Virus record (IMG/VR): IMGVR_UViG_3300025009_000050
Span: 180,053-244,052 of that record
Direction: 5' to 3' (one strand)
DNA length: 64,000 nt
The translations under genes and the position numbers were made by a program. This document shows positions 1 to 29,294 of this stretch, one piece after another; positions within the stretch are counted from its first letter, which is position 1, and each line of letters starts with the position of its first letter. The notes below the pieces were generated by a model. That model did no database searches, was not told where the DNA came from, and worked only from the letters and a program-made list of their open reading frames with translations.

Positions 1-3000
1 TGAAGGTTTCTCTATCTCCACGAATCATTGCATTGACCATTTCGGATGAAGAACTTATTCTCTTATCAAGTAGCTTATTCCTCTCTGCTTCTTGTCCTGC
101 AGAATCTATTCCAGCCCATTCATCAATTGTTTTTGCTAGATGATCATCAAGTGCAGATTTCGAGAAGTGTTTAGACGAGATAGAAGACTGTGTTACCAAT
201 TCACCGAGGGCTGTTACAGCTTGTGCTTTCTTCAAGTCAAACGACTGAGGATTTATTCTCATAGCAATCTCTGCCATCTTACGCATTGAAGTAGCTACGT
301 TCGAAGAGTAACCAATATATGAGCGGCCAAGTCTTGCTTCTAATTCGGCTCTTGCGACGCTTCCTACGGTTTGTAGCTCTGCCTTTGGTAGATCTATATT
401 TTCACCCGTATAAGCCTTCACCCAATCTCCGTATGATGCACTGCTACTCTTTCTATTGTCTGCTTCATATAGCTTAGATACTAATTCATCATAGAACTGT
501 CTTCTAGGTTCTATCTCTCTTATATGCGCTGCTATTTCACCTATTGCACCTGTGCCAGACCGTAGTTGAGATTCAATCTGCCATCTGGTTTTGCCTTTGA
601 AGTGTGCAAGCAGAGTGGACATAAAATCACCATCGTTGTCTGCTGCATAAGCTACGGCATCACCAACAGTTACTTGAATTGCATGAGGAGCTAGCCTATC
701 TAATGCCTCGTTAACTCTGAGCCAGGTAGGTTCTATAGACCTTAAGCCTTCTGTAGGATAACGACCTACTATACCAGGCAGACCTTTAACTCCATACTTC
801 TCCTGAAGTTCTCTAGTGTCTCCGAGTGCTAATTCTTCTAATAGCTCAGGAACACCTTTCTTCATACCCTTAGTCATTTCTCTTAATCTACCAAGGGATA
901 TTTCAGCAGTAGCTGCTGCTTTCTTTTGTCCAGGAGAGAATGTTTGAACTAAGAATTGTCCGCTATGTTGGAGTCTAGCAGATTCTATACTGTTATAAAC
1001 AAGACCTTTAGAATCGCTGACACCTCTGATGTTTACGTTGGTGAAATGATCCATTGCCTTTTGTAGGCTTGTGCTTGCTTCTTTCCCTGTTAGGTCAAGC
1101 GTAGCTATGTCTTGGAGCGTTCTAATCACTCTACCACTTGCTGCTAATAATTCATTAGCCTGTGGCATTTGAGCAACCCCTAGTTTCCTAGGCTGTCCTA
1201 TAGGTAGAAAGACTTTATTGATTATATTATCACCAGCAGTTACATAGAACGGTAACTCAAATACCGCTCCACCACGGGACAATATTTTCTCTGCCTTCTT
1301 TGGAGTAAGAGCTCCAGGTTCTCCAGAATGTACTTGGTTATTAGCTATCTTCTCTATGTCGTCATACCACGTACCGGTATAGTCGATATCACTCTTGACA
1401 TCTCCAGAACGTAGGAATCTTTTAAATGATGATAATGATACTCTGCCTTCTCCAGTTTCTCCTATAGGAGTCTGAGAATGTATTACTGTGTCTCTACTGT
1501 CTATCATTCCAGTTAGACTATTAATTGACCTTTCATACTTTCTTAACTGTGACTTTACTTCCTTCTTCCCAGCTTCTATGCGTCCATTTTCGCTAAGCTT
1601 GTCTGCAACTGCGCCATCTAATAGATCTACTCCAGCTTGTTCTCTAACCATCTTCTCGTATTCTTTAGCTGTTGCAGTTAACCCATTAAGTCGAAACATG
1701 CCTATTTCCTTGGGTCCTATCTTGTATATACCACCCTCACTACCTACTGCTTTGAACCATGGTTCAATAGGTTGTGCTCCTACATTCTCATAACCAGTCA
1801 TTATATTACCAACACCAGCAACATTAATTAATAACTTGTCCGTTAAGTTGCTTCCTATAATGTCACTTACTTTATCAAGCACTTGCGTCTTGAATAGCTT
1901 GTGATCTATTACTTGGTTCTTAGGATTATTGATCATCACAAGCATTTTATTCTTGCTTCCTGGTACGTCTTCAAACTTGAACCCGCTATTGCCGAAGAAG
2001 TTATTGAGAACTTTGATTACATCATCTTCTACTTTGTTTCTTACTAGATTCTTTGTAGTAATCTGATTCTGTACTTCATTAACCATAGCCCTTACTTGGC
2101 TACTTATGATGTCTCCATGTCCGCCGTGCTTGAGTGCTTGCGAGCCCATTACAAGATGAAGCTTATCGGCCTCTGCTCCGAACAAACTGTTCCATCTATC
2201 GTTCTCAACCAGAGTCAAAGTCATCTTATCACCGCTAGAGGTTATAAGTTTAAGACCATTTGCTGCTGGTAGTGTTCTTTCTACTGAAACTTTATATTTG
2301 TTTTCTCCAAGTTTCGTTATAGCATTTACTACACCAGGCTGTTTCTTATTATACCTTGCATCTCCCTGAAGTACGCCGAAAGTATTACCTTCGCCATCTA
2401 CTATCTTAGACTCTACCAATTGACCAATGGTGAATGGCTTTTCAGAGGGAGCGATAGTATAAGGGTCGCCCTTCTCTATCGAAGCTAGTATCTCCTTATT
2501 AATGTCACTAACTACATACTCGTTAACCATCTTCATCTTGAGAAGATCATTAGCTATATCGCCACGCATAAATGCTCTGGCGTCATACGTCGATTCTACT
2601 AATCCGGTTAAAGGAGCTCCAGTCCTCTCAGCCTCAGCAATCATCTTCTGTACTTGGTTATCATCCATGTAAGCTGTCTTAACAGTAACCCATGGTGCTA
2701 AGTTATTACCTGTGACTCCATATCTAGCTTTCCCTGCTTCAGTCATGAGTAGGGGGTTAGCTAGTTCACTATACTTCGTTCTAAGTGCTTCTGCTGATTT
2801 AGGGTGGAATGGATGGATATTCTCTGCCTGTGTCATCCTCATTGTTGCTGCAGATGAATGGTATCCAAATGGAATGAACTGACGTATGTCATTGACACTA
2901 CGACTGATTCTTCCATTCTTACCAGTAAACTGAGCTTCCTTGAGTGTGTGAGGATTTAATACGTCATTTATAACATCGATAGGAGTACCAAGTTTTACAC

Positions 3001-6000
3001 TTAATCTCTCTGCAATGGTTCTATTCAGGTTTACAGAGTCAGTTAAGTTCAAACCTGAGATGTCCTTCCCAGCTAGGAATTCTTTTATTCCTTCAAAGTA
3101 GATTACTTCACTACGCTGTCTTATACTAGCATGACTTAGGTTGCGTATCTTCCTAGTATCCATTACTTCATCGGAGTCAAGGAAATTGGCACCAGATAAG
3201 TCTTTAAGTACTTTGTTCTGAGCCCAGTTGACAAGTGCCTGTGCTTGTGCATAGTCTCCTTTCAACATTGCTTCTTTAACTCGTTTAGATATACCAACCT
3301 GAGATTGTAGAATCTTATCGAAGCTTGTTTCAACACCAATGTTCTTACCATCAAGTGTGAAGTCCATCTGGTTAATTCTCATAACCCTACCAACAGTAAG
3401 AATCCTTCTTTCATCCACCAATGGGATGTTAACCTTAACTACATCGCTATTATTCATTATCTGTTCTACTGTCTGCTTACCTACTGTTGCTGCTTTCTTC
3501 TCATCATATAGAGCAAAGATAAAACCCTTATTGTCAGGTGATGACAATATAGTCCCATCTATATTTGCATCTGTAAGATACCTTGATAGTAGCTTCTTTA
3601 TTGGTTCTTCTGCTTTCCTATTAAGCCCGAATAAAGGCCCTAGTCTTTTTAGTGGAGAAAGCTGTTCATGAATAATAGCATTATGCGCTTCTAACATCTT
3701 AGCAAACTCTTGGTTTGCCGCTAGGTTAGGAACAAAAGCTTTATCTATCTTCTGCCATGCACTACTACCACGTCTTTGTCCTTCATCTAGCGCATGATTA
3801 GCTACCAACCGCATTTGATCAGGGGTAAGCTTTTCCCATATGCCTCCATTATTGGCATCAACATGGGCAACCTTATATGACAAGAACTCATTAGCTAAGT
3901 TCTTAGCTTGTATGTCGTCTATCTTCATACCAGAAACAATATCATTAGCTATCCTAGTCCTATCAAAAAGCTTTGCTGCTATTTGCTTAAGTACAAAGTT
4001 ACTTTCTCTCGGACCTTGCTTCTGGATCTCTGATAGTCTTAGAAAGTTAGTAACTTCAGTACGATCTAATATATGCTTACCACCTAACTTATTTATTAGC
4101 ACTGGTAGTTCGATTTTGTCGATGGGTCTTTTGGTGATTTGCCTTAGCTGTGACACTATACCTTTATAACTACCAAGATTAAGAACTATATTATCTGATA
4201 GTTGTAACATTCTATTGTTAGTTGTAGTCTTAATAACTTTCTTAGCTGGACTAATCCCACCAGTAGCTTTACGTAAGTCAGGTATTTGGACCCTACCTTC
4301 CATTATGTCTTGTAGGGCAGTAAGGGCAAAGTCCTTCTGTACTCCTTTAAGACTTTGGAATGTTCCGCTACTAATGACAGCATTAATCATTCCTCTCTCA
4401 GCTCTTAGCCTATCTTGCATATAGTAGAAGTTTCTAGCTTGTTGCTCAGAATTGAATAGATCTTTAAATTGTCCCTTAGTTAAATCATCCATAGAAGCTC
4501 TATTGACTCCAGCTTTATCAATTGCATCAAGAGCTCTCATGTATCTCTCCGCTCTTACATGGCCTCCATCGGTATCAAAGATTCTATAATATGCACGTAG
4601 AGCTCTGTCCTTCATTCTCTCTGTCCTAGTTTCTTCACCACTGACACCAGTAATATGTTCAGCATTATATGGTACTAAATGAGAGAATATACTACGTATA
4701 CTATCGAACCCAGTACCACTAATATTCTCAGGTCTAACAAAGGTATGGTATAATCCTTCATCTACATTACGTAGGGTTAATGCCCATCCACCATGTTCAA
4801 AACCTTCAAGAGCGCCCTTCTCTATCTGCTTAAAGCTATGAATTCTGTACTCGGTATTCTTATATAGGTTCCCACTAGATATAGGCTTATCGGGGTTGTC
4901 TGAGTAAGCATCTATGAATTTGCCTGTATCATCAAGTTTATATATCCCATCGTACTTATTCTTTTCATAAGGACTTAATCCGGAAATTGAGAATAGACTA
5001 CTATCAGACTTTATTGTCTTGTTGTCTATAGCAAGTACTCCACCACTTATAGCATTCCAGTCTAATGATATGCTAGCCCCAGCTGCTATTCTTCTAGCAC
5101 TAGCTATCTTACTATTAATATTACCTCCAATGGAGTTGAGTAACATAGGTACTGCTTCAGCATCTCCACCAGCAAAGTGTTCAATTCTATTATTGAAGGC
5201 ATTAGACAATACCTCTAATGTAGTTAGACCTTGTTTCCCTCTTATCCCACCACTTAATGTCTTGTAGTGTTCCCTCATTTTCTTGTCACCAATTAGCGGT
5301 GCTATCTGTCCGATAGGGTCATGATATGCAAGGTCAATAAGTCTATTAACATCCAACGCTCTATGAGTACTATTAATGATATGTAGGTTCTTCATTAGGG
5401 TTTCAATGCTACTACTAATAGGACTCTGTGGTCCAAGAGCAGTCCTAGTCTGATTAAAGTATTCCATCATGGCAGGGATATCGTGTTCTAAGAAGTTATA
5501 CCCCATGAGGTTACCGCCATTCTTAGCTATGTTCTCTACATGATGATTTATAGCTTTAATCATGCCATCAAGATAGCTACCTGAGTTTCCATTGCCATAT
5601 AAATTTTTTAAGCCATTTCTCATCTGTGAAGTGTATGCTTTCAAATTAGTAAATGTAGATCTGTCTGGTAACTCAGATGGTGACTTAAGCTTATCTTTAT
5701 TGACAAGTCTTACATCTCCTATGCCTGGGATTGTCTCTGTCTTAAATACCTCAGAATCTTGATACCTCATTAACCACCACAGTGTACGTCTATGATCATC
5801 TGTTAATCCAGCCATTCCTGTGCTCTCTACTTGTTTGATTAAATTTTTTAGTTCTACCTTCTGCTTTTCATCTACGAAGCCAGCTAATGTCATAGTATTC
5901 ATTTTATCTAGCATTGGAGAGCCACTCTTGAGGCCATTGAACTGCCAACTAGACAAACCTACCTCAGTCATAGCAAATAGATTCATGCTCTGATTCTTTG

Positions 6001-6418
6001 CAAGTGGACTGACACCGAGGTTTTCAATATCTAAGCTTAAGTGAGTCATGCCTACATTTTTAACCATGTTCTCCCATGCGGTTATTGTTCTTTGCGCTCT
6101 AGTAGCTCCCCTGGTATTTATGTAATTAAACACACTAGTGCTTGGGTTACTAAGTACCCCATTTATTTCAGCGTTTAGTGCCCTACTAACTTTAGATCTC
6201 TCTACTACGCCACCAATGTTTCTAGGTGCACCAATGAAGTCTGGGATATTCTTAGAACGTATTATCTGTTCTTTAGTCGGTTCTGAATTAGGGTCGTAGT
6301 AATTCCTACCTGAACCACCAAAGTTCATAAGAACTTTTGGAGTACCTATACTATTAATAATACCTTTCTGTTCCAATACACTAGGTATACTAAAGAGTTC
6401 GCTATCATTAAACTTCAT
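1..6418 (-). CDS. Giant single-chain (beta+beta'-like) RNA polymerase with N-terminal DEDDh exonuclease; probable virion RNAP; 3' end outside window (>2139 aa)
   Basis: Manual translation from ATG 6418 (SD aaggtggg). All motifs are in one frame. Exonuclease: SLDIENLG (D130/E132), GYNFLEHD (D313), HFAGGD (H414/D419). Beta-like: FIPFGYHSSAATMRMTQAENIHP, GLKLITSSGDK (K1390/K1398), GGIYKIGPKEIGMF. Beta'-like: KGLVYNSIESARLQHSGQF, GRYP (R1886), AADNDGDF (626-640). Confidence 0.88.
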   Translation of the reverse strand, partial: MKFNDSELFSIPSVLEQKGIINSIGTPKVLMNFGGSGRNYYDPNSEPTKEQIIRSKNIPDFIGAPRNIGGVVERSKVSRALNAEINGVLSNPSTSVFNYINTRGATRAQRTITAWENMVKNVGMTHLSLDIENLGVSPLAKNQSMNLFAMTEVGLSSWQFNGLKSGSPMLDKMNTMTLAGFVDEKQKVELKNLIKQVESTGMAGLTDDHRRTLWWLMRYQDSEVFKTETIPGIGDVRLVNKDKLKSPSELPDRSTFTNLKAYTSQMRNGLKNLYGNGNSGSYLDGMIKAINHHVENIAKNGGNLMGYNFLEHDIPAMMEYFNQTRTALGPQSPISSSIETLMKNLHIINSTHRALDVNRLIDLAYHDPIGQIAPLIGDKKMREHYKTLSGGIRGKQGLTTLEVLSNAFNNRIEHFAGGDAEAVPMLLNSIGGNINSKIASARRIAAGASISLDWNAISGGVLAIDNKTIKSDSSLFSISGLSPYEKNKYDGIYKLDDTGKFIDAYSDNPDKPISSGNLYKNTEYRIHSFKQIEKGALEGFEHGGWALTLRNVDEGLYHTFVRPENISGTGFDSIRSIFSHLVPYNAEHITGVSGEETRTERMKDRALRAYYRIFDTDGGHVRAERYMRALDAIDKAGVNRASMDDLTKGQFKDLFNSEQQARNFYYMQDRLRAERGMINAVISSGTFQSLKGVQKDFALTALQDIMEGRVQIPDLRKATGGISPAKKVIKTTTNNRMLQLSDNIVLNLGSYKGIVSQLRQITKRPIDKIELPVLINKLGGKHILDRTEVTNFLRLSEIQKQGPRESNFVLKQIAAKLFDRTRIANDIVSGMKIDDIQAKNLANEFLSYKVAHVDANNGGIWEKLTPDQMRLVANHALDEGQRRGSSAWQKIDKAFVPNLAANQEFAKMLEAHNAIIHEQLSPLKRLGPLFGLNRKAEEPIKKLLSRYLTDANIDGTILSSPDNKGFIFALYDEKKAATVGKQTVEQIMNNSDVVKVNIPLVDERRILTVGRVMRINQMDFTLDGKNIGVETSFDKILQSQVGISKRVKEAMLKGDYAQAQALVNWAQNKVLKDLSGANFLDSDEVMDTRKIRNLSHASIRQRSEVIYFEGIKEFLAGKDISGLNLTDSVNLNRTIAERLSVKLGTPIDVINDVLNPHTLKEAQFTGKNGRISRSVNDIRQFIPFGYHSSAATMRMTQAENIHPFHPKSAEALRTKYSELANPLLMTEAGKARYGVTGNNLAPWVTVKTAYMDDNQVQKMIAEAERTGAPLTGLVESTYDARAFMRGDIANDLLKMKMVNEYVVSDINKEILASIEKGDPYTIAPSEKPFTIGQLVESKIVDGEGNTFGVLQGDARYNKKQPGVVNAITKLGENKYKVSVERTLPAANGLKLITSSGDKMTLTLVENDRWNSLFGAEADKLHLVMGSQALKHGGHGDIISSQVRAMVNEVQNQITTKNLVRNKVEDDVIKVLNNFFGNSGFKFEDVPGSKNKMLVMINNPKNQVIDHKLFKTQVLDKVSDIIGSNLTDKLLINVAGVGNIMTGYENVGAQPIEPWFKAVGSEGGIYKIGPKEIGMFRLNGLTATAKEYEKMVREQAGVDLLDGAVADKLSENGRIEAGKKEVKSQLRKYERSINSLTGMIDSRDTVIHSQTPIGETGEGRVSLSSFKRFLRSGDVKSDIDYTGTWYDDIEKIANNQVHSGEPGALTPKKAEKILSRGGAVFELPFYVTAGDNIINKVFLPIGQPRKLGVAQMPQANELLAASGRVIRTLQDIATLDLTGKEASTSLQKAMDHFTNVNIRGVSDSKGLVYNSIESARLQHSGQFLVQTFSPGQKKAAATAEISLGRLREMTKGMKKGVPELLEELALGDTRELQEKYGVKGLPGIVGRYPTEGLRSIEPTWLRVNEALDRLAPHAIQVTVGDAVAYAADNDGDFMSTLLAHFKGKTRWQIESQLRSGTGAIGEIAAHIREIEPRRQFYDELVSKLYEADNRKSSSASYGDWVKAYTGENIDLPKAELQTVGSVARAELEARLGRSYIGYSSNVATSMRKMAEIAMRINPQSFDLKKAQAVTALGELVTQSSISSKHFSKSALDDHLAKTIDEWAGIDSAGQEAERNKLLDKRISSSSEMVNAMIRGDRETF

Positions 6419-6430
6419 TGGTGTCCCACC

Positions 6431-9400
6431 TTAAACATTGATTATATTTCCAGGATCTCTATTCATAACATTGATTATCTCATTGGTTCTATCCTTGTCT
6501 ATTGATACATTAACATTCATTGAATGGGCTTCCGCAGCTGGACCATGAGATATTTGCACATCTATATCAGACAGTCCCGCTCCACGTAGTACTTGACTTA
6601 GCCTAGTTTGTATACTTCCTATGTAACTACTAGGCTTGAAGGGATCTACATCAGGAGCAGCTTCAGCATATGCCTCATCATCGGGCCAGTATCCGAATTC
6701 AGACATATCTAGTGCTTCGTTCTTTATTACCTTGAGTTTAATGTCCTCCAAACTTACGTTAGCTTTCCAGCCTTCCCAGTTAGCAGTTGGGAGATAATGA
6801 CCACGGAAGTAATCAGTGATACCGACCTTCTCATTTTGTTCCATTCCCCATCTTGCCTGGTATAGTCTACGTTGGTTCTTAGGAACTAGACTGAGAATTT
6901 CCTTCCTCTCACTTTGGTCTGCGCTCATGAAGTACTGATAAAATTCTCTATCCTTCTTAGGTAAGGCACGATATATGTTTACCATATCTCCAAGTGGATC
7001 AACGCCATATAATGTTGACTTCGCTTGTAGATTGTAGTATAGAGCTTGGATTGCATCAGGACCTAGTTGAGTGAGTCTTCTATCCTCGTCTATAGCAGTT
7101 AGCTCTCTATTGATATCTTTAAGCTTAGACTTGTTCAGGTCTGTATCAAGTTGTCCATCAACATCTTGTAACTTAAGCCATCTCTTAAGTGACTTAAGGG
7201 TGTTTCTCCTAGCCTTATTAATTCTTCCGCGCTTAGTCTCATCAGCAATTATATCCTCTACATCTACGCCTTCTGTAGCTATAGCTTGCTTTCTAGCTTT
7301 CTCGTAGAGTCCCTTATATTTAACGTACTTGAGCATATCGAAGTATTCGTTGATCTCACGTTCTTTACGACGACGCTTGGGTATCCATACTTCACCTGAT
7401 GAGTCTGTAGTCTCCCCAAGTACACGAGCTGTTGATAAGCCACCAGCAGTTACAGCACCGGTAAATGTGCCAAGCTTTCTACCGAGTACATTAGAGCCGA
7501 ATAGCCTACCTAGTACTGCACCATATAAAGCAGCAATTGGTGGTGACTTGGCAGCGAATGCCTCTAGTGTTGGCTTCATAATTCCGCTCCAGGGATCGTA
7601 CCATGGTTGCCATGCTTTACCGTGTACTTCCGTACGCTTATACATTTCAAGCGGAGATCTCACTTGTAAGAACTTTGTATGGAAAGCTGTATCAAGGTGA
7701 GCAAACCATTCCCACCACTTACCTACTGTTATCTCCTCAGGATAGAATCTAGCGTTAACTCCAACAGCGCTGAAATCAGTCTCCTTCTCAGTAACCTGAT
7801 CTCCAACTGTTCTGAGTAATTTAGCTTGTAGTGGACCACCTTCTGGAGTATATACTACGGCATGCATGGTGCTCAGTACGTCCTTCCGGACTCTATTAAG
7901 CGGGTCCTTGTCTATACCTATCTGTACTTTAGCTCCAGGGTATATTATTGCTTCTATCTCAGCTCTTGCTTCTGCTGAAGCTTCATCAGCTACTGGTACA
8001 TGTATGCCAGCAAGTCTAATTGGATGGTCTGGATGTTCAGCAGTCATGAATGTATTGGCATCTATAACCTTAGTTACGTTAACTTCTTCATTAATTATGT
8101 CAGCAGTTCTGAATTTATATGGATATAAGTTATATTTCTTCTTCTGCTGAGATACTTGTTTCTTAATGGTAGTCACTTGTTTTCTTTCTAATGGATTAAG
8201 TGACATCCTAGATACTATATCTTTATACAGCTTATGTTGTTCTGAGTATGGAGCCACGTCTGCAAGTATCTTGAATCTATCGAATGCGCCGTACTCACCG
8301 AACTCATCTGGGTGTAGATTATTTAATCTTTCATATCCAGAGCCTGGTAGTCTAGCCTCACCATTTTGAATCTTACCATATGGGTCTCCATGTCTAAAGT
8401 CCATAATATATTCTGGACCTGGCAACCAATCAGGCATCTGGTTCCCATATGGGTTGTATTGATTGCGTCTATGTTTACTATTAGGAGCAAACCTACGGAA
8501 TATCTCAGATACCGCTCCACCCATGCCACCAAGGTTTTGATCCCAGAATCCACGTCCAAAGCTGTTCATATATGATGCAGAAGCTAAGGTATTCCTGCTT
8601 CGTGGGTTATTCTCTCCACCAAACATCTGTGTTAATGTGAATCCGTAGATACCAGCCATTTCAGTTAGGCTGTAATACGTTTCTCCAGCCCTATATGCTA
8701 AGCTATTCGGGCTCATTACTTCATCTAGATCTGATATATTATCTATACCACGCATGAGATCGTTCTTACTGAATCTCATACTTCTTATTGCTCCACGACT
8801 AATAATACCTTGGTTTATGGACGTAAGTTGTTGACCACTAGCTGTTGACCCACTACCAGGAGTTCCTATAATGGGTACTCCACCGATGTTAACATTGCCG
8901 CCTGGGCTTATTGAGTAACCACCCATTGTGGTTGCTATGCCTGGATATATATTAGATAGTGCTATTCCACCGGATGCTGTTGAGTAAGCATAACCTTGTT
9001 CCTCAGCTGCCTGAGACTTAATTGATTCATTAATATCCGTAAGATACTGTCTATGAGCCTTAGATAAGTCTCCACGTTGCATATCAGGAGCAATTCCAGC
9101 CATGCTTAATGTCTTTGATGCAAGTGGACCAAAGAGTGGTAGTTCTTCTAATATGGATGCTCCACCAGTACTTGGATAAGGTCTGTCTTCCTTATGTTTG
9201 TAAGCATAGTGGTGTGGGCTAGCAATTATAGCATTTATAGGACCAATTGGGTTCTCAAGTGTTGGGTACCACTGATTCCCATAATACTCAGCTCTACTAC
9301 CATACATGACATCACTCATCATGTAGTCCGTCATTTTTCTTCTATACCAGTTGGGCATAAAGTAATCTACTTTACCGCCAGACCATGGTGTATTAGAACC

Positions 9401-12400
9401 AGTCCCCCAGTACCTTCCCTTTCTAGCCGGGTCATTTCCATATGAGTAGTACTCAGTTAGTTCCTGAGAGCTACGAGTATCGCCGATCAATCCAAATGTA
9501 GCAAAGTTAATTGCCTTGGTAGGCAACCATTCTGCAAGTTGGTCTGAGCCAGAAAACATGTCTTTCCAGCGCTTCATCATACTAGTTACGCCAGTTGCAT
9601 CTTTAAACTTGGCCATGTCTATTCTAGCGCCTACGTAGGCGCTAGATAGCTCTTCACTGGGCTTAAAGCCTGTTATACTAGCTAAGTAATCTGAATACCC
9701 AAGGTATCCAACAGTAGCCATTGGTAACAAGAATCTTCTACCAATAAGATTTAGATACGCATCCTGAGCAGAACCCAGTGACTTATTACTTAATCCAAGT
9801 CCAGCCTTACCTATGGCTTCATTCAGACGGTTAAACATGTAGTAACTTATTACAGATGCAGTAGATACTTTATCAAGGTTATCTCTACCAGCTCTAAAGC
9901 CAAATCCAAAGTCAAAACCAAGTTGACCTATAGTACTCTCAGAGAATGCCTTGATGACTCCGCCTATTCCTTCCCCACTCTTGATGGCTTCGTTAACCAT
10001 TTTGATCGGGTTGACGGACTTATTAATAACTAGGCTTCTAGCATTACCAAAGTGTTCAGGAGGAGGGAACCCAGGGCCTGCCCCCCACCATGGAGTATGC
10101 CTCTTTACTGTAGCATTGAGGCTTTCAGAGAACCACGTATCTTCCCCAGCAAGTGACCCTAAGAATCTATTTGCTGCGTCTGCTTCGTCCTCTGCATTAA
10201 TAGGTCTAAATATACCTCTGAATAGTTCTGCATTTTCACCACGCATACGATTAAGCAGCAGTAACTCTTCTGCTCTTTCTGCGTCTTTACCAGTTAGTGT
10301 AGATCTTACTAAACTGGATACTGTAGACTGACCCTCTGTATCAAACGTCTTTTGTATTTGGTACAGTAAGTCCATATGCATAGCTCTTCTAGCGTCTTCT
10401 AGTTGGGTTACGAGTTTAGTACTACCCTCGTTCTCTATCATTGAGAATATGCCAGGTAGTGCCGGTAACTCATCAGTAAGAACACGTGGTGAGTTAGCAA
10501 ACTTCTTCGGATCTCTATATAACTTTACATATTTGTTTAATAGATCTTGTACCGGGCTTCCACTAGCTGCTGTAGTCCTATGCTCTACCATCTTTCCAAT
10601 AGTAAGCATAGTCTCTTCTTCGGTTCTTGTTACAAAGTCAGCAGGTTCTAAACCGAATCTACTAGCCATAGTGGTACCATCAGGACCTCTAAGAGCAGCT
10701 AACCTCTCTATTGCATTGTTACTTAAGGCAGATGACTTTTGACTTAATATATTGTAAGCAGATCTATATGAATCTACTAGCTTGTCAGTGTCATTAACAT
10801 GGAGCATAGAACGTTCAAGAGTTTCTTCTAGACTCGCTCCTGATTCTCTTGCTTCATTCCATAACGCTACTCTCTTGCCAGTATAGTCATATTGATTTCT
10901 AGCCCAGGATGGGTTCCAGAACTTTGTGAATACACTAGTTATTTTACTAACATCACTCTGAGAATCTTGCATCCCGTAGTCAAATAGTTTTCTTATCGGT
11001 CCACTACGTTCTCTAAGTATCCTGGTCTCTTCTCGTTCAAGTCCAGCCATAGCTGATAATGTACGTGGGAATAAGCCAAACCTAGCAGAAGCTCTATATA
11101 CATTATCCTTAACAAGATTTACTTCAGGACTAAGGTCGAACACTTTATCATTAACAGCTAAGTAGTCACGCCTTATAGGTGATGTATGTCCAGTAAGAAC
11201 TGGCTGCGCTTGTCCTGTACCACGTCTAAGTATTTCGCTAAAAGGTGCACTTCTTATTCCCTGCCAACTAATCCAGTGAGCCAATCTTAATGGGTTAATA
11301 TTAACGAATGGTATATGGAAATTATTAGCTAGGAACCCTAGCGTGCTGTGGAATGAATCAGATACATGGCGCAGATCTATTATGTCACCAGTATCTTGAT
11401 GTACAAATATATTTTTATCAACTCTGAGTTTAGCTAGTTCTGCATCTTTACTAATTAGAGACTCTATCTTCTGGTTCCATTTCATAGTCCTTTGGACTAC
11501 TCTAGTCCTGTCTGTTCCCTTGATCCTCTTTGAAAATGGTATTACGGTATTATTAAAGAAATCTCTCTTAACTGCTTCGCCAACAGTTAACTGTTGGTAT
11601 CCAGCACCTTCCATTACCCTGGTAAACCAGGTATCCTGCACACGCATAGATTCCTTGAACGTGCTACGTAAGCGCTTTGCAACATTTGATAATGTTCTAG
11701 TAAGGATATCTTGTGCTTCATTATCGAATGAAGGTATAGAACCATATTGTTTAGCTAGTAAGCTCTGATTTCTTATTGCTTGAGCTATTACATCTGTGGT
11801 ATGGTCAGCTTCTGTATCACGCAAGCCTGACTTTCTAACTAATTCCCTAATGGCATCTGGACTGGCACCACGAAAGAATGCATCGTTCTTTTGCTCTAAG
11901 TGTGGTTTAATGGCATCAAACATGTCATCCGTTAGATGACCATGCCTAGGATTTAGCTGCTTCATCACCCTACTATAAATAAGATTACCAGTAGACTTCT
12001 CTAGAGCTTCTTGTGGGGTATACATCAGCTCCATCCTAGTTCTTACAAATTCAGATGGAGCTCTTCCTACGCTGTTCTTAGGAGTAAGGTGGACATCTCT
12101 CATTCTACTTCTGAAATTCTTAGATATATCAGCGATTGTATCTTCACTAAATATAGAGAACAGACTCTTATCAGCTACTGCCTCGTCAATAGACTTACCA
12201 AATGCGCTTGTGGTTTCAAAGAGTCTTCTACTCTTAGAAAGAGCTGGTGCTATGTACTTTGCTAATAGACTAGTGCCGCCAGCTCTATGAAAACCATATG
12301 CGGCACCACTAATAGCAGTAAAACCCAGGGCTGACCTTACAAAGCTGCCCTGGGTTTCGTTAGGGGAGCTGTTGAGGTACTTTTGGTATTGGTTAGTATA

Positions 12401-12406
12401 ATCCAT
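6431..12406 (-). CDS. Tape-measure-like/ejection virion protein (1991 aa) with a degenerate SNase (thermonuclease) domain
   Basis: Very long ORF directly after tube and chaperone genes; Gly-rich hydrophobic segments; VTKVIDANTF...IRLAGIHVP resembles the SNase VIDGDT...RLxGIDAPE motif. Confidence 0.65.
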   Translation of the reverse strand: MDYTNQYQKYLNSSPNETQGSFVRSALGFTAISGAAYGFHRAGGTSLLAKYIAPALSKSRRLFETTSAFGKSIDEAVADKSLFSIFSEDTIADISKNFRSRMRDVHLTPKNSVGRAPSEFVRTRMELMYTPQEALEKSTGNLIYSRVMKQLNPRHGHLTDDMFDAIKPHLEQKNDAFFRGASPDAIRELVRKSGLRDTEADHTTDVIAQAIRNQSLLAKQYGSIPSFDNEAQDILTRTLSNVAKRLRSTFKESMRVQDTWFTRVMEGAGYQQLTVGEAVKRDFFNNTVIPFSKRIKGTDRTRVVQRTMKWNQKIESLISKDAELAKLRVDKNIFVHQDTGDIIDLRHVSDSFHSTLGFLANNFHIPFVNINPLRLAHWISWQGIRSAPFSEILRRGTGQAQPVLTGHTSPIRRDYLAVNDKVFDLSPEVNLVKDNVYRASARFGLFPRTLSAMAGLEREETRILRERSGPIRKLFDYGMQDSQSDVSKITSVFTKFWNPSWARNQYDYTGKRVALWNEARESGASLEETLERSMLHVNDTDKLVDSYRSAYNILSQKSSALSNNAIERLAALRGPDGTTMASRFGLEPADFVTRTEEETMLTIGKMVEHRTTAASGSPVQDLLNKYVKLYRDPKKFANSPRVLTDELPALPGIFSMIENEGSTKLVTQLEDARRAMHMDLLYQIQKTFDTEGQSTVSSLVRSTLTGKDAERAEELLLLNRMRGENAELFRGIFRPINAEDEADAANRFLGSLAGEDTWFSESLNATVKRHTPWWGAGPGFPPPEHFGNARSLVINKSVNPIKMVNEAIKSGEGIGGVIKAFSESTIGQLGFDFGFGFRAGRDNLDKVSTASVISYYMFNRLNEAIGKAGLGLSNKSLGSAQDAYLNLIGRRFLLPMATVGYLGYSDYLASITGFKPSEELSSAYVGARIDMAKFKDATGVTSMMKRWKDMFSGSDQLAEWLPTKAINFATFGLIGDTRSSQELTEYYSYGNDPARKGRYWGTGSNTPWSGGKVDYFMPNWYRRKMTDYMMSDVMYGSRAEYYGNQWYPTLENPIGPINAIIASPHHYAYKHKEDRPYPSTGGASILEELPLFGPLASKTLSMAGIAPDMQRGDLSKAHRQYLTDINESIKSQAAEEQGYAYSTASGGIALSNIYPGIATTMGGYSISPGGNVNIGGVPIIGTPGSGSTASGQQLTSINQGIISRGAIRSMRFSKNDLMRGIDNISDLDEVMSPNSLAYRAGETYYSLTEMAGIYGFTLTQMFGGENNPRSRNTLASASYMNSFGRGFWDQNLGGMGGAVSEIFRRFAPNSKHRRNQYNPYGNQMPDWLPGPEYIMDFRHGDPYGKIQNGEARLPGSGYERLNNLHPDEFGEYGAFDRFKILADVAPYSEQHKLYKDIVSRMSLNPLERKQVTTIKKQVSQQKKKYNLYPYKFRTADIINEEVNVTKVIDANTFMTAEHPDHPIRLAGIHVPVADEASAEARAEIEAIIYPGAKVQIGIDKDPLNRVRKDVLSTMHAVVYTPEGGPLQAKLLRTVGDQVTEKETDFSAVGVNARFYPEEITVGKWWEWFAHLDTAFHTKFLQVRSPLEMYKRTEVHGKAWQPWYDPWSGIMKPTLEAFAAKSPPIAALYGAVLGRLFGSNVLGRKLGTFTGAVTAGGLSTARVLGETTDSSGEVWIPKRRRKEREINEYFDMLKYVKYKGLYEKARKQAIATEGVDVEDIIADETKRGRINKARRNTLKSLKRWLKLQDVDGQLDTDLNKSKLKDINRELTAIDEDRRLTQLGPDAIQALYYNLQAKSTLYGVDPLGDMVNIYRALPKKDREFYQYFMSADQSERKEILSLVPKNQRRLYQARWGMEQNEKVGITDYFRGHYLPTANWEGWKANVSLEDIKLKVIKNEALDMSEFGYWPDDEAYAEAAPDVDPFKPSSYIGSIQTRLSQVLRGAGLSDIDVQISHGPAAEAHSMNVNVSIDKDRTNEIINVMNRDPGNIINV

Positions 12407-12409: not shown

Positions 12410-12961
12410 TTACACCCCTCTACTGCTCCCATCGTTTTTCATTTTACGTAATTCTGGGAAAGCATCGTAATCTATTGGTTGTTCCTGCGACTCATTTGTC
12501 AACGTAACTCCATGCATTGTTGACAACATCCATTCTGCCCTCGACATATAGTAGAGCGTTTTCCTTACGGTCCAACCATTAATCTCATCAAGGTCAAACT
12601 TAGGAAAAGCTGCACAAATCATAGGGGCGATTTGATGTTCAAAATTCATGGCTTCTGACCTGTAATAGTTAAGCATACTCCTACTACTATCTCCCATAAA
12701 ACCAGATTCCTTAAGTATTAATATGGTCATAGTAGTTGGAATTCCAGCATAACAATTAGTGTAGTCATAGTCTACAGGTGAAATTACGCACAACCGACAT
12801 ACGTGCTCTTCTCTTTCCTCCTCATTAGGATAGAATCTTTTAGCCTTTTCAAACTCGTCCTTGGTTAGTTCTCGCCATATAAATGTTTCATCACATATCT
12901 CAGTTTTATATACTGATTCATATTTACTATTGATGGATAATAGTACTTTTGGGTCGAACAC
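12410..12961 (-). CDS. Tail assembly chaperone (paralogue 2)
   Basis: Between tube genes and tape measure; shares FIWxxL..xE, EExVCxxC and AGIPT with the upstream gene. Confidence 0.6.
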   Translation of the reverse strand: MFDPKVLLSINSKYESVYKTEICDETFIWRELTKDEFEKAKRFYPNEEEREEHVCRLCVISPVDYDYTNCYAGIPTTMTILILKESGFMGDSSRSMLNYYRSEAMNFEHQIAPMICAAFPKFDLDEINGWTVRKTLYYMSRAEWMLSTMHGVTLTNESQEQPIDYDAFPELRKMKNDGSSRGV

Positions 12962-12980
12962 TATAATCCCACCCTGAGTT

Positions 12981-13418
12981 TTACAATTTTATAGCCGATG
13001 CTCTAGCTGAGAAACCGGATTTGTCCATAATCTGTTCACTAAGAAATGTAGGAATGCCTGCTTTACCGCTAGCCATATTTGAGAAATTGTAACTTACAGG
13101 CCATATGATGCATTTCTCACAGACACGTTCTTCCTTGTAGTAGCTATCAGCGCCCTGTACCTTCATAATGTCTTTGTATTCCTTACGAGACAAACAGTGC
13201 CAGATGAATACGTCTTCATCAAACTCTGTAAAGTAGATATCCTTATATCTAGACTTCCATTCTTCAATCTTGTTTAGTGTTGGACCTTCGGGGAATAGCA
13301 ATTCCTCACCATCGCTATTAAACACGGAACCATACTCTTCCTCAACAATATTGACTTCATCCACAACTTCTTCATCCATAATTTCTTCAACGACTTCTTC
13401 TTTCTTAATTTTAGCCAT
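12981..13418 (-). CDS. Tail assembly chaperone (paralogue 1)
   Basis: Position, acidic N-terminus, FIWHCLSRKEY / EERVCEKC / AGIPT. Confidence 0.6.
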   Translation of the reverse strand: MAKIKKEEVVEEIMDEEVVDEVNIVEEEYGSVFNSDGEELLFPEGPTLNKIEEWKSRYKDIYFTEFDEDVFIWHCLSRKEYKDIMKVQGADSYYKEERVCEKCIIWPVSYNFSNMASGKAGIPTFLSEQIMDKSGFSARASAIKL

Positions 13419-13432
13419 GATTATCCTCCTAA

Positions 13433-14230
13433 TTATTTGCCTAACCTAGTAAAATCACCATCTAGGTCTCTGGCTATAAATGAATACTCTTCAAACAATG
13501 GTTGTCCACTTGGGTCAATGCTTTGGCTACAACCAGTTAATTGCACACCAACAATAGTCTTAACTGTATGATTTATCGCTGTCTCTTGTTTGCCAGATAT
13601 CTCTGTTTCCCTTTCCATAGCTCCATATGTGATCATGATATTCAGACCATCCTTGTGTAGCGAAGGCTGTCTTCCTTTTGGATAAAAGTATGTCGAGTTC
13701 TCTTGTTCGTTTACTCTCTGTTTGAATGCCTCAGTACCAGAACCCCATAAGGACTCCTCATACACGTCTGCTAAGTTCTCGAACTTGTCTACTGTCATAT
13801 TACTTGCCGCAGCAAGAATACCTTCTATTGTATTTTCACGATATGTATTAGTAAATTCAAATGGAGGGTTTGTGGTTCCAGTTTTACGTTCATTTTCTAG
13901 TTCGTTAGTTACTGCATGAATATAATAAGCCTCTTTAAACGAGATACGAAACGATCCCTGGATAAGTCTAGTCCCTCTGGCTACAGCATCATAAGTATAG
14001 CTTGCATATCCATATATAGGGGCCACGTTCTCATTAATTGAGAACTGCATTGTTACTATGTCATCGACTAATACGTCTCCGAAATAGATACTGACATCAC
14101 AGCCACTAAAATATTCCTCACTGAATCTTTGATACTCAACCATACTACGTTGTCCAGAGACAAATCTTGGGCTCCTATGACTTCCATATTGAATGGCACT
14201 ACGCTCTGCACCTGGCCAATTTCTAATCAT
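13433..14230 (-). CDS. Tail tube-like protein 3 (tube initiator/baseplate hub-like)
   Basis: YFSGCDVSIYFG...APIYGYAS...ARGTRLIQGSF...YSFIARD parallels the two tube proteins. Confidence 0.6.
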   Translation of the reverse strand: MIRNWPGAERSAIQYGSHRSPRFVSGQRSMVEYQRFSEEYFSGCDVSIYFGDVLVDDIVTMQFSINENVAPIYGYASYTYDAVARGTRLIQGSFRISFKEAYYIHAVTNELENERKTGTTNPPFEFTNTYRENTIEGILAAASNMTVDKFENLADVYEESLWGSGTEAFKQRVNEQENSTYFYPKGRQPSLHKDGLNIMITYGAMERETEISGKQETAINHTVKTIVGVQLTGCSQSIDPSGQPLFEEYSFIARDLDGDFTRLGK

Positions 14231-14233
14231 ACT

Positions 14234-14779
14234 TTAACCTCCAATTAACCAGCTATAATCTTCTTCTTCAATTTCAGTCAGCACCTCTATATCTATAGCC
14301 ATGTAAGACATGGTTTGTTCTGTGATCATATCTTCGATACTCATTGTCTGTCCTTCGTCTATGAAGGTGATACCATATAAACGGATAACTGCCCTCTGGC
14401 CATATTCGTTATTGAATGTGATTGTTATATCTATTGGAGGCATTTCATCCATCTTCATATTAACCATCATATCCTTCTTATCGAGTTCAGGTATGCTGCT
14501 GTAAGATGTTCCTACCAATCCTTTCTCGATGAGTTTTCTTATAATGTGTCGATCAAATACTGTGAATATTAGCGACCCAGCTATAGTACGTGGTCCCTTT
14601 GTAAAGCCTTTAGGATTAATTCTACCAAGCGTTCTCACTGGAAACTTCTCTCTATGAATACTGTAGGATATAGTTTGCAATTCTCCAATCACCATAGTTG
14701 AACCACCAACTGGAGTGATTGTAGCTACAATATCTGAACCAGAAAAGCTAGTATATGTCTTAGTATATTTGCTTGTCAT
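14234..14779 (-). CDS. Tail tube protein paralogue 2
   Basis: YTKTYTSFSGSDIVAT...GELQTISYS...IAGSLIFTVFDR; clear paralogue of 14828-15367. Confidence 0.7.
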   Translation of the reverse strand: MTSKYTKTYTSFSGSDIVATITPVGGSTMVIGELQTISYSIHREKFPVRTLGRINPKGFTKGPRTIAGSLIFTVFDRHIIRKLIEKGLVGTSYSSIPELDKKDMMVNMKMDEMPPIDITITFNNEYGQRAVIRLYGITFIDEGQTMSIEDMITEQTMSYMAIDIEVLTEIEEEDYSWLIGG

Positions 14780-14796
14780 AGTATTTCTCCTTATGT

Positions 14797-14828
14797 ATAA
14801 GTGATGGGGCTATAGCCCCATCACTTAT
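14797..14828. terminator. 32-bp perfect palindrome between tube genes (terminator or mRNA-stabilising hairpin)
   Basis: ataagtgatggggctatagccccatcacttat; no U-tract. Confidence 0.55.
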
Positions 14829-15367
14829 TAGCTTTTAGGTATCATATGGCTGAGTCCACGAGCAACGAATGTGCAAGCTTTCTCAGTAGTTATATCGTCA
14901 ATTGATAAACCCATACCTTCATTGAGTATTTCTACACCATAAATAGACATAGTAGAAGATTGACCATACTCGTTCATGAATGTTATTACGATATCAAACG
15001 GAGGAATTTGGTCAGCATAGATTGCGTCAGCCTCAACGAATTCGTTATTATTATCCTGAGCAGTATCCCATTCATCCATACTCATGGGATCTTTTGTGTT
15101 GGCACTAGCAGTCATGTACTTACTGTCATCCTTCATATTGTGGAATACATCACGGTCAAACACTTGGAACACTAAGGAACCAGCAATACCGCGTTTACCA
15201 CGGCTAAAGGACCTAGGGTCAGGAGAACCCATTGTGTAGATCGGAGCTTTTTCACGGGTGACTGAATAAGTAATAGCTTGTAATTCACCAATTACCTTTC
15301 CAGCAAATGTTGCAACAATGTCAGCACCGCTGAAACTAGTATATGTCTTTGTGTAACTTGATTTCAT
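14828..15367 (-). CDS. Major tail tube protein
   Basis: Immediately downstream of sheath; TYTSFSGADIVATF..GELQAITYS..RGKRGIAGSLVF. Confidence 0.75.
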   Translation of the reverse strand: MKSSYTKTYTSFSGADIVATFAGKVIGELQAITYSVTREKAPIYTMGSPDPRSFSRGKRGIAGSLVFQVFDRDVFHNMKDDSKYMTASANTKDPMSMDEWDTAQDNNNEFVEADAIYADQIPPFDIVITFMNEYGQSSTMSIYGVEILNEGMGLSIDDITTEKACTFVARGLSHMIPKS

Positions 15368-15383
15368 TGGAAAACCTCCTCAT

Positions 15384-19069: not shown

Positions 19070-19073
19070 TTAT

Positions 19074-19607
19074 TTACCTCCTAAAACCAATATCATATAT
19101 TAGATCTACTCCAGATTTACGTACATTGAAAGCAACGATTTCCTTTTGAACTGCTTGGATTCCACAAAATATTTTAGAGTATTCTACTCTTCCATTATCG
19201 CTTCTAAGATTATCAATTGTATTTATCTCATAAATGGAGTAGTCAGATAGTATCGGTAATCCATTTTTGTCAAAGTCACAATCTATCAGCAAATCCTTGA
19301 TATTGGGTTTGACATTATATCTAAAGTAAAATACTCTTGATGGAACGGCTACCTGCCCATAATCAGTTTGTTTGTTAGACCTTGCTAGTGTTTCAGGTAT
19401 ATTTGCTATACCGCTTCTACATCTATGTCTCTCAACTACAGATATAAAGCCAAGTCCATAGCAATATGGACAAGTTACTGGAGACTCTTGAGTTTTATCA
19501 TTCCAGCAGATACATCTTCGGTTTTTACCACTACGGATAAGTAATACAGAATAACCATATTTAGAAAGCAGGTCTTCAAATTCTTTTCTAAGATCCAACG
19601 ACCTCAC
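19074..19607 (-). CDS. Putative head-closure/neck protein with Zn-binding Cys motif
   Basis: Position after adaptor; CxC...CPYCYGLG. Confidence 0.5.
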   Translation of the reverse strand: MRSLDLRKEFEDLLSKYGYSVLLIRSGKNRRCICWNDKTQESPVTCPYCYGLGFISVVERHRCRSGIANIPETLARSNKQTDYGQVAVPSRVFYFRYNVKPNIKDLLIDCDFDKNGLPILSDYSIYEINTIDNLRSDNGRVEYSKIFCGIQAVQKEIVAFNVRKSGVDLIYDIGFRR

Positions 19608-21082: not shown

Positions 21083-21120
21083 CTGTTATCACTCCTTACA
21101 ATCAGGTTTTATGTAGATGA

Positions 21121-21148
21121 AGGGCAGACAGACTAAGCCGCCCGCCCT
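21121..21148 (-). terminator. Hairpin after major capsid gene
   Basis: agggcgggcggc-ttag-tctgtctgccct on the minus strand. Confidence 0.5.
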
Positions 21149-21156
21149 CGTTATTC

Positions 21157-22254: not shown

Positions 22255-22281
22255 TGGATATTTCCTCCTTAGTCTATATGG

Positions 22282-22304
22282 AGAGTGGAGACAAGCTCCA
22301 CTCT
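22282..22304 (-). promoter_or_regulatory. Hairpin just upstream of the MCP ribosome-binding site
   Basis: agagtggag-acaag-ctccactct, 9-bp stem. Confidence 0.4.
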
Positions 22305-22314
22305 AATCAATTAA

Positions 22315-23799: not shown

Positions 23800-23820
23800 C
23801 TCGTGTTTCCTCCTTTAGGA

Positions 23821-25149: not shown

Positions 25150-25153
25150 CTAT

Positions 25154-27241: not shown

Positions 27242-27248
27242 CTCCTAG

Positions 27249-29283: not shown

Positions 29284-29294
29284 CGTCTAGCCTC

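Follow-up and report, generated by a model that had tools for sequence, protein, structure and literature searches.

RNA polymerases (RNAPs) carried in phage virions set the start of an infection and provide insensitivity to host-RNAP inhibitors and to some defences. To our knowledge there are only three well-known solutions, namely the T7-like enzyme of N4, the single-chain two-barrel enzymes of the crAss-like phages and P23-45, and the split multisubunit enzymes of phiKZ and AR9. A single-chain two-barrel virion RNAP that is hidden in a giant tail protein is a kind of enzyme already known from P23-45 gp96 and crAss gp66. Among 224 jumbo phages, including ME3, Iyer et al. assigned double-barrel RNAPs only to group 1, 0305phi8-36 and c-st (PMC7824862), and according to a 2026 review most jumbo phages are devoid of RNAPs (PMC13282480). 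The present analysis concerns a stretch of 64,000 nucleotides (positions 180,053 to 244,052 of the IMG/VR record IMGVR_UViG_3300025009_000050; hereafter the window) from the 244-kb genome of a jumbo myophage and, in particular, the giant protein P0001 encoded at its left edge. The data point to P0001 as probably being a tail-delivered virion RNAP, with the polymerase core located in the C-terminal two-fifths (residues ~1180-2100). The jumbo myophage belongs to the 0305phi8-36/WH1 lineage, and these phages, for which dependence on the host RNAP had been assumed, probably inject an RNAP of their own.

An interpretation made from the window alone, referred to here as the sequence-only reading, had proposed that an open reading frame (ORF) missing from the supplied ORF list starts at position 6418 of the minus strand and runs off the window. 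Translation of the minus strand from 6418 to 1 indeed yielded 2139 codons with zero stops, an outcome with a chance of ~1e-69 according to the base composition, and the remaining five frames of this segment contain 59-297 stops each. The frame was absent from the ORF list because it crosses the window edge. Its ATG start codon at 6418 is preceded by the Shine-Dalgarno-like sequence AAGGTGGG and follows the stop codon of an upstream ORF of 1991 amino acids (aa) after 12 nucleotides. Public gene calls use the same start and specify a full length of 2452 aa, and the identical full-length gene is present on 244-kb contigs in JGI, ENA and IMG/VR. Accordingly, the window comprises residues 1-2139 of P0001 (1..6418, minus strand), representing the first 87% of the protein, whereas 313 residues are encoded beyond its edge. 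The motifs quoted in the sequence-only reading were all located in the translation in the proposed order and without an in-frame stop between them. On the beta side these are FIPFGYHSSAATMRMTQAENIHP (residues 1181-1203), KTAYMDD (1247-1253), STYDAR (1276-1281), GLKLITSSGDK (1388-1398) and GGIYKIGPKE (1562-1571), followed on the beta' side by KGLVYNSIESARLQHSG (1804-1820), GRYP (1885-1888) and DNDGD (1927-1931; window 626-640) and, behind the beta' barrel, by IGYSSN (2035-2040) and QSSISSK (2077-2083).

Searches of Pfam, PHROGs and the PDB with the single P0001 sequence were empty, Pfam searches with four homologs gave noise only, and a word-based homolog search returned P0001 itself. The tblastn comparison with 50,697 phage genomes provided one relative, gp034 of KLEB27-3 (2434 aa, 23% identity, annotated as 'structural protein'), which in turn led as query to gp095 of WH1 ('virion structural protein') and to the homolog of phage Edson; the labels virion or structural protein were given to the WH1 and KLEB27-3 homologs by the depositors. 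An exhaustive HMMER search of 1.84 billion cluster representatives finally resulted in 14 proteins, nearly all with a size of 2260-2450 aa, and the family members are collinear from end to end in the alignment despite sharing only 20-30% identity. Since the key residues of the motifs are kept across a family of giant proteins at this low level of identity, the motifs are not explained by chance. The related-locus search with close relatives in IMG/VR detected only the same phage, and that with a four-member alignment in species-representative bacterial genomes gave no match. The conservation counts given below refer to 13 aligned members for the beta' side, to the 12 members covering the beta region and to 11 members for the exonuclease. 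The middle region of P0001 (residues ~446-1159; 2942..5083, minus strand) is conserved in the family and collinear with the Bacillus phage homologs, and no family or structure match to it was detected in Pfam, PHROGs, and PDB sequence and profile searches.

An AlphaFold2 model of residues 1150-2300 was built with the 13-member alignment and compared with the PDB by means of Foldseek, a check of the kind that the sequence-only reading had suggested. The search provided 674 matches at E<=1e-3, and the best 50 of them are without exception large subunits of multisubunit RNAPs, belonging to the two classes of beta'-type and beta-type chains (E 3e-6 to 4e-5, prob 1.00). Among these best 50, the beta'-type matches include the top hit, chain 7s01_d of the AR9 non-virion RNAP (nvRNAP; 3e-6), and many bacterial beta' subunits, while the beta-type matches at ~1e-5 include the beta subunits of C. 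difficile and B. subtilis, vaccinia Rpo132, Pol II Rpb2 and plastid beta (7l7b_C, 6wvj_C, vaccinia 8p0j_B and Pol II 7pks_B). The same picture emerged from the BFVD, including beta-like subunits of nucleocytoplasmic large DNA viruses and poxviruses, where the three best matches are a protein that is probably the homolog from WH1 (TMq 0.51), a gut-siphovirus protein annotated as 'minor tail protein' (4.5e-17) and an uncharacterised protein of ME3 (1.5e-8). As the model matches both of the barrel-bearing subunits, it indirectly suggests the presence of two double-psi beta-barrels in one active centre.

The beta'-like double-psi beta-barrel (DPBB-A; residues ~1793-1940; 599..1042, minus strand) is delimited by hhalign, by conservation and by the fold matches at ~3e-6, and carries the blocks S-x-R-x3-SG-F (1813-1822), R-Y-P-T (1886-1889; window 752-763) and the catalytic-type A-D-N-D-G-D (1926-1931; Asp triad at window 626-640). 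The family profile aligned residues 1793-1938 with residues 324-471 of E. coli beta' (E=0.0037), and the sub-profile of residues 1780-1945 aligned with residues 316-474 over 148 columns (Prob 77.7%, E=1.9e-5), thereby placing SKG..S.R...SG.F, RYPT/NRAPT and ADNDGD/NADFDGD in register. The residues D1927, D1929, D1931, R1886 and P1888 are invariant in the 13 members, with the R-x-P motif (R1886/P1888) located 41 residues ahead of D1927. In the described enzymes, the Mg-binding triad is formed by Rpb1 D481/483/485 and QDE-1 D1007/1009/1011, and the R-x-P motif, placed ~35-45 residues ahead of the triad, by Rpb1 R446/P448 (PMC2919709). A relaxed tblastn search of all phages with the beta'-like segment yielded the jumbo-phage RNAP beta' genes of PhiEaH1, SPLA10 and PCH45 as top, albeit weak, matches outside the family, and the archaeal Rpo1N was touched weakly at the catalytic loop by the family profile (E~2). 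Downstream of the barrel, the model and the conservation pattern outline a long helix resembling the bridge helix (residues ~2018-2055; 254..367, minus strand) with the invariant residues A2028, R2029, G2036 and N2040, followed by the conserved block GELVTQSSISSK (residues 2072-2083; 170..205, minus strand) with invariant Q2077, S2081 and K2083 (Q..IS[SA]K in the family), which might be the equivalent of the trigger loop, judged from its conservation and its place behind the barrel.

These data support the homology of the P0001 core to RNAP large subunits and are in agreement with the single-chain beta/beta'-type enzyme recognized in the sequence-only reading. An RNAP likeness produced by short motifs and a mediocre model, in which case P0001 would be an unrelated giant tail protein, is consistent with the empty Pfam, PHROGs and PDB sequence searches and with the TM-scores of 0.11-0.20 to the RNAP chains, which are low because only parts align. 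Such an artefact is already largely refuted by the fold matches, whose best 50 of 674 comprise solely RNAP large subunits of two classes, by the independent profile match (E=1.9e-5) to the correct region of beta' and by the independent weak tblastn matches on phage RNAP beta' genes, and it is considered extremely improbable.

The beta-like half (DPBB-B region; residues ~1180-1575; 1694..2881, minus strand) precedes the beta'-like barrel and is defined by fold matches and conservation. It contains PFG..N (1183-1200), STY[DE] with a conserved acidic residue at 1279, an all-beta insert of ~105 residues, G-x-K-x5-G-x-K (1388-1398; window 2225-2257) and W..G..G.VK.G.KE (1554-1571), the equivalences on this side being based on motif, order and the fold matches to beta chains. 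The basic pair K1390 (K/R) and K1398 (K/R) is kept in each of the 12 members spanning this part of the protein, and the spacing of G-x-K-x5-G-x-K equals that of GDKMAGRHGNK in E. coli, i.e. the cellular K-x7-K arrangement. The acidic residue (D/E) at 1279 is likewise kept in 12 of 12 members and is a candidate counterpart of Rpb2 D837. Its distance from the lysine pair amounts to about 110 mostly beta-strand residues, an arrangement shared with cellular beta but not with QDE-1. The connector between the barrels (residues ~1576-1790; 1049..1693, minus strand) was assigned by position only and its model is partly of low confidence; a clamp-forming connector is an element of other single-chain two-barrel RNAPs (PMC10770324). 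Ruprich-Robert and Thuriaux described eight residues that are invariant in all two-barrel RNAPs, including the basic pair K979/K987 and the acidic D837 of Rpb2 in the beta-type barrel (PMC2919709). The ordered counterparts in P0001 are D1279, K1390, K1398, R1886, P1888, D1927, D1929 and D1931, which are conserved in every aligned member.

The sequence-only reading had also pointed to enzymes of the YonO, crAss and QDE-1 type. A likeness to YonO and QDE-1 was not found, the beta'-like barrel matching cellular beta' in the hhalign comparison and not YonO or gp99 of 0305phi8-36. The barrel sub-profiles aligned with SPbeta-type YonO and gp99 only with scores of ~14 and at wrong positions, and PF05183 was not matched in Pfam at E<=1. 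Furthermore, QDE-1 is characterized by R-x4-K and a gap of 29 residues (PMC2919709), whereas P0001 contains K-x7-K and an insert of ~110 residues. On account of the K-x7-K motif, the insert, the missing alignment to YonO and gp99 and the lack of a PF05183 match, the core is read as a beta-then-beta' fusion of the cellular or jumbo-phage type and not as a YonO/QDE-1-type enzyme.

The N-terminal part of P0001 likely contains a divergent version of a DEDDh domain, interrupted by large insertions of helical structure. This DnaQ-like 3'-5' exonuclease-like domain (residues ~120-445; 5084..6061, minus strand) shows D130-x-E132 (ExoI motif; window 6023-6031), N308-x4-D313 (ExoII motif; 5480-5497) and H414-x4-D419 (ExoIII motif; 5162-5179) in order and invariant in 11 members. 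The model is confident over residues 110-440 (pLDDT 80-93), and its best Foldseek match is the E. coli nuclease ExoI (E=0.057, prob 0.77, many entries), followed by RNase T, with nothing at E<=1e-3. The family profile matched small DEDDh-like chains of the PDB over the ExoII-ExoIII part (E=0.003), and hhalign gave E=0.01 for the ExoIII region of RNase T and E=0.13 for ExoI over the right extent, whereas DnaQ was not significant; a Pfam RNase_T match to P0001 was not obtained. With respect to the DEDDh exonuclease that had been predicted as a fusion partner, the catalytic residues thus stood the comparison as invariant positions, while the profile (E=0.003) and fold (E=0.057) matches are weak. 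In gp146 of 0305phi8-36 (positions 22623-30233 of locus L008), which occupies the same place among the tail genes, the string 'YLDIETTG' is found at ~1223 and conforms to an ExoI-type D-x-E-T-T-G motif. D-x-E-T-T-G is the classic ExoI exonuclease motif, and an exonuclease-like domain may be shared by this slot even where the RNAP is absent.

The combination of both domains raises the question whether the core belongs to another enzyme, either a proofreading DNA or primer polymerase resembling PolD or an RNA-templated RNA polymerase resembling QDE-1. The fusion of a polymerase with a DEDDh 3'-5' exonuclease is the distinguishing feature of proofreading DNA polymerases, the P0001 family keeps the catalytic residues of the exonuclease without exception, and PolD as a two-barrel DNA polymerase as well as QDE-1 extend the fold beyond DNA-templated RNA synthesis (PMC10770324). 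The best fold and sequence matches, however, are subunits of DNA-dependent multisubunit RNAPs, a match of the YonO or RNA-dependent RNA polymerase type was not found by Pfam and hhalign, and the exonuclease, whose own homology is moderately supported, is separated from the core by ~700 residues; we therefore regard such an enzyme as quite improbable.

The position of the P0001 gene suggests a link to the virion. In 0305phi8-36 the genes are arranged in the order sheath (gp139), tube (gp140/141), chaperone pair (gp143/144), gp145 (1930 aa), gp146 and hub (gp147), where gp146 (2537 aa) is annotated as 'hypothetical tape measure protein' and both gp145 and gp146 were detected in virions by mass spectrometry according to the annotation. 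The order at the P0001 locus is sheath, tube, chaperone-position ORFs, gp145 ortholog, P0001 and hub ortholog, and this synteny of the slot is kept in metagenomic relatives, in KLEB27-3, WH1 and Edson, and in ME3. Two metagenomic relatives have a neighbourhood in which an ORF of ~2000 aa precedes the family member and one of ~2200-2300 aa follows it; in one of the relatives (L009) an ORF of ~90 aa lies between the member and the downstream giant, which carries an SNase domain and is followed by an M15 peptidase and baseplate J. The assumption that the RNAP gene comes right after a tape-measure-like gene has thus to be revised, as P0001 itself fills the tape-measure slot and the upstream gene (6431..12406, minus strand; 1991 aa) is the ortholog of 0305phi8-36 gp145 and WH1 gp096 according to blastp (WH1 gp096, E=0; gp145, E=5e-136; ME3_35, E=1e-16). 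The genes on both sides of P0001 are thereby orthologs of virion proteins verified by mass spectrometry.

BLASTP revealed no similarity between P0001 and gp146, and gp146 of 0305phi8-36 is completely devoid of a DxDxD motif. Both share the C-terminal module, in which the P0001 family has a hydrophobic segment rich in Gly and Ala, a linker rich in Pro and Gln and a conserved end domain of ~100 aa (just outside the window). This module aligned with the gp146 C-terminus at E=2.7e-4 and a score of 33.7 in hhalign, compared with scores of 18.8 or less for 30 shuffles and of 10-15 for the other giants, and is homologous to it as judged from these profiles. A gp146 match confined to the C-terminus agrees with Hardies et al., in whose comparison the gene at the equivalent position in the BtI1/BwK1 elements could also be aligned only over the final 60 residues (PMC2147016). 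The slot of ME3 is occupied by ME3_36 (1603 aa, 'hypothetical protein'; positions 22173-26984 of locus L015), whose profile alignment places SSG.., R-x-P and GGDHDQD blocks in register with the beta'-like barrel of the family. ME3_36 is likely a shorter RNAP-bearing relative in a jumbo phage of a Gram-negative host; it matches the fold of the core model at 1.5e-8, and ME3 is not listed among the RNAP-encoding jumbo phages. Moreover, 0305phi8-36 encodes a separate YonO-like RNAP, gp99, beside the terminal repeat, and a gp99 homolog is not detectable in KLEB27-3, WH1 and Edson. The putative slot RNAP and the putative gp99-type RNAP accordingly show a complementary distribution among these phages.

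The same slot can be read in a different way, namely that P0001 is a structural tail or tape-measure protein of RNAP descent that has lost polymerisation and serves as an exapted scaffold, with the host RNAP acting throughout the infection. For 0305phi8-36, the length of the tail had led to the placement of the tape measure in this slot (PMC2147016), gp146 fills it without DxDxD and the structural role of the slot therefore needs no active site, and the review cited above attributes no RNAP to most jumbo phages (PMC13282480). On the other hand, the eight active-site positions along with the bridge-helix-like and Q..ISSK blocks are kept in 12-13 members at 20-30% identity, which is hard to explain without catalysis, and even the far more divergent ME3_36 keeps R-x-P and DxDxD, so that the scaffold is an unlikely, though not negligible, explanation. 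An active RNAP might alternatively be a late-made or intracellular enzyme that is merely encoded amid tail genes. Such large globular domains would be difficult to accommodate in the lumen of a tail, and the presence of the family in virions is a prediction only. Against an enzyme of this sort speak the translational coupling inside the sheath-tube-giant-hub block with its conserved synteny, the C-terminal module shared with the virion protein gp146 verified by mass spectrometry, and the virion location of the giants N4 gp50, crAss gp66 and P23-45 gp96 (PMC10770324); in addition, a late-made enzyme would have no obvious use without a route to the next cell. This possibility is rated as somewhat less probable than the scaffold.

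The synteny and the shared C-terminal module therefore lead us to infer that P0001 is packaged in the virion and injected as an RNAP. According to the proposed mechanism, the C-terminal module would build P0001 into the tail, between the gp145-like protein and the baseplate hub, and upon infection P0001 would be ejected through the tube, ahead of or together with the DNA. The beta'-like barrel would provide the Mg-binding triad D1927/D1929/D1931 and R1886/P1888, the beta-like half would contribute K1390, K/R1398 and the acidic D1279, and the joined halves would transcribe the first phage genes without the host RNAP. The RNAP might be anchored at the entry pore and help to pull the genome in, as transcription at the entry pore has been proposed for P23-45 gp96 (PMC10770324), and the N-terminal DEDDh domain would probably add a 3'-5' exonuclease activity. 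The catalytic activity, the specificity for template and promoter, the ejection and the part played by the exonuclease are predicted features of this scheme.

Several observations weigh against a tail-delivered RNAP. About 1300 of the 2452 residues are predicted to be globular (exonuclease and RNAP regions), which is awkward for a tape measure inside a tube. The core model is of moderate quality (predicted local distance difference test, pLDDT, 66; predicted template modelling score, pTM, 0.60; core blocks 70-89), the two barrels and the convergence of the eight residues are deduced from fold matches and conservation, and neither the hhalign comparison of the beta-like half with E. coli RpoB nor that of the bridge-helix/trigger-loop block, in which ARLG was aligned with beta' ARKG at E=0.65, reached significance. 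The 'structural protein' labels in WH1 and KLEB27-3 are depositor annotations. The survey for RNAPs covered the 64 kb and the flanks of the 244-kb genome, and a second RNAP is possible elsewhere. The promoter hunt in the window yielded no promoter motif, the only recurring motif being coding, and activity, virion presence and an early transcription role are predicted for every member of the family.

The genes surrounding P0001 conform to the assignment of the window to a jumbo myophage. The minus-strand structural block includes a terminase (30135-31757), a single ORF of 695 aa (25154-27241) in which the portal is joined at its C-terminus to a minor head protein domain of the Mu-F-like type (PF04233), a coiled-coil scaffold-like protein, an HK97-type capsid protein (21157-22254), an Ig-like decoration protein and a DUF2586 tail sheath identified by Pfam (15384-17024). 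The sheath, small tube-like ORFs and chaperone-position ORFs, deduced from Pfam and synteny, are located ahead of the giant genes (12410..17024, minus strand), and the gene order from the sheath to the giants is the same in KLEB27-3, WH1, 0305phi8-36 and ME3. In KLEB27-3 the ortholog of the 1991-aa giant is divided over two genes, gp031 (1340 aa) and gp033 (677 aa), and a small ORF separates the two parts (positions 4539-11692 of locus L001). Past the window edge follow, in this order, an ORF of 94 aa, a protein of 1972 aa, an M15 peptidase, a sheath-initiator-like protein and Baseplate_J. The 94-aa ORF belongs to conserved ORFs of 86-94 aa between the RNAP gene and the hub ortholog, and the 1972-aa protein (positions 17656-23574 of locus L002, outside the window) is the ortholog of the 0305phi8-36 hub gp147 (E=2e-62). 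This hub ortholog has a hydrophobic stretch at residues 1861-1891 and, at the N-terminus, a staphylococcal-nuclease (SNase) domain (8e-6), in which case nuclease-type domains would occur on two of the tail giants. By terminase comparison, the nearest phages are the Bacillus phages WH1, Edson and KLEB27-3 and the Moorella phage MTATph1 (~45% identity), followed at a greater distance by 0305phi8-36 (34%) and the Acinetobacter phage ME3 (29%).

The minus-strand structural block meets a plus-strand block of small ORFs at ~36000-37500, where the GC skew changes its sign from about -0.16 to +0.22, which marks a boundary of divergent transcription. The plus-strand block encodes a YodL-like protein (PF14191, 6e-9; 48202-48774) and a DUF1256/YyaC germination-protease-like protein (2e-58; 56395-56970). 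Both families are typical of endospore-forming Bacillota, and a host from this group is suggested by the two genes, which possibly interfere with sporulation or cell shape. In the same plus-strand block, a NUDIX hydrolase (54919-55461), two adjacent DnaJ-domain proteins (59573-60106 and 60094-60663, plus strand) and a Macro-domain protein (62558-62998) are candidates for host-takeover or anti-defence functions. Sigma factors were not found among 20 scanned window ORFs, a YonO-like gp99 homolog was not found in the window, and sigma70-like promoter sites are not enriched in the window (79 versus 70±9). A 63-nucleotide repeat family with the core TAACTARTAAGT is present in five plus-strand copies at 38317, 47039, 47455, 48784 and 48986. 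The copies at 47-49 kb (window 47027-49182) are read in frame close to the N-terminal ends of small paralogous ORFs arranged in tandem, for example 47412-47630, 48774-48983 and 48976-49182 (plus strand), which share the Cys-containing motif ..T-[SN]-[KR]-C..NGMC... A function of TAACTARTAAGT as promoter was ruled out, since the repeat is coding sequence.

With regard to novelty, the family differs from the enzymes described so far by a sequence that is closest to cellular beta', the opposite domain order in the giant, the fused DEDDh-like domain and the occurrence in contractile-tailed jumbo phages. A literature search of limited coverage did not reveal a description of an RNAP in this family, and these phages are not mentioned in the searchable supplements of the P23-45 paper (PMC10770324). 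A more far-reaching proposal is that jumbo myophages regarded as 'RNAP-less' encode, throughout an entire lineage, a cryptic cellular-type beta+beta' RNAP fused into one chain in the slot protein; such a lineage delivers it through a contractile tail and uses the DEDDh domain together with the RNAP, for example in RNA 3' end trimming or proofreading. It would cover the 0305phi8-36/WH1 group of Bacillota phages, ME3 with a shorter form of the protein, and a gut siphovirus whose 'minor tail protein' is related by fold; the proposal is put forward tentatively, as the whole of it may well not hold. If true, P0001 would be the first example of a two-barrel RNAP joined to a nuclease of the proofreading type, and its beta and beta' parts would have been fused in an independent event that sets it apart from the YonO/QDE-1/crAss branch. 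The family as such would also require a revision of the view that jumbo phages outside the Chimalliviridae mostly depend on the host RNAP (PMC13282480), and it is directly testable because three cultured Bacillus phages, KLEB27-3, WH1 and Edson, carry it.

A close described counterpart is P23-45 gp96, which like P0001 is a single-chain two-barrel RNAP with DxDGD in a giant protein of the tape-measure slot that was missed by ordinary sequence searches (PMC10770324); it is likewise proposed to be injected for the earliest genes and has a hydrophobic segment in the non-polymerase part. P23-45, however, is a siphovirus with a non-contractile tail of 800 nm, whereas P0001 belongs to a contractile-tailed jumbo phage. 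In gp96 the RNAP is N-terminal and precedes a tape-measure part of ~3800 residues that includes a metallopeptidase, whereas P0001 combines an RNAP in the C-terminal half with an N-terminal exonuclease-like domain and contains no peptidase. Moreover, P23-45 possesses a second, non-virion RNAP, and none was seen in the 64-kb window. Both proteins were compared by fold and description, the P23-45 chains being outside the best 50 of 674 fold matches. The P0001 family would represent a second, independent case of the 'tape-measure RNAP' of P23-45 and would suggest that polymerases are recurrently delivered through the tail lumen.

The phi14:2 protein gp66 (PDB 6VR4) is also a large virion-associated single-chain two-barrel RNAP with DxDxD that is known by motif and structure, but it originates from podovirus-like Crassvirales and is structurally closest to QDE-1 (PMC10770324). 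The fold ranking sets P0001 apart from it, with cellular-type beta' and beta chains first and 6VR4 outside the best 50 of 674. YonO of SPbeta and gp99 of 0305phi8-36 are single-chain two-barrel RNAPs with DxDGD from Bacillus phages, including a relative of the lineage itself, yet they are non-tail proteins of 840-1220 aa. The split RNAPs of phiKZ and AR9 share with P0001 the occurrence in jumbo phages and a transcription independent of the host, which is predicted for P0001, one set of the split enzymes being packaged in the virion, and the beta' subunit of the AR9 nvRNAP is the top PDB fold match of the P0001 core. Each of these enzymes is built from 4-5 polypeptides, is carried in the phage head and is easily identified by its homology to RpoB/RpoC, whereas both halves are fused in P0001, beta-like then beta'-like, in one tail giant with other domains. 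N4 gp50 provides an analogy only, as a virion protein of ~3500 aa with a central polymerase flanked by injection and packaging domains, since its T7-like single-subunit (right-hand) polymerase has an unrelated fold. With regard to the evolution of two-barrel polymerases, the family would add a new single chain that is by sequence nearer to beta' than to YonO and QDE-1 and, next to the three solutions named at the outset, would constitute a fourth variant, a cellular-type beta-then-beta' fusion in the contractile tail of a jumbo phage.

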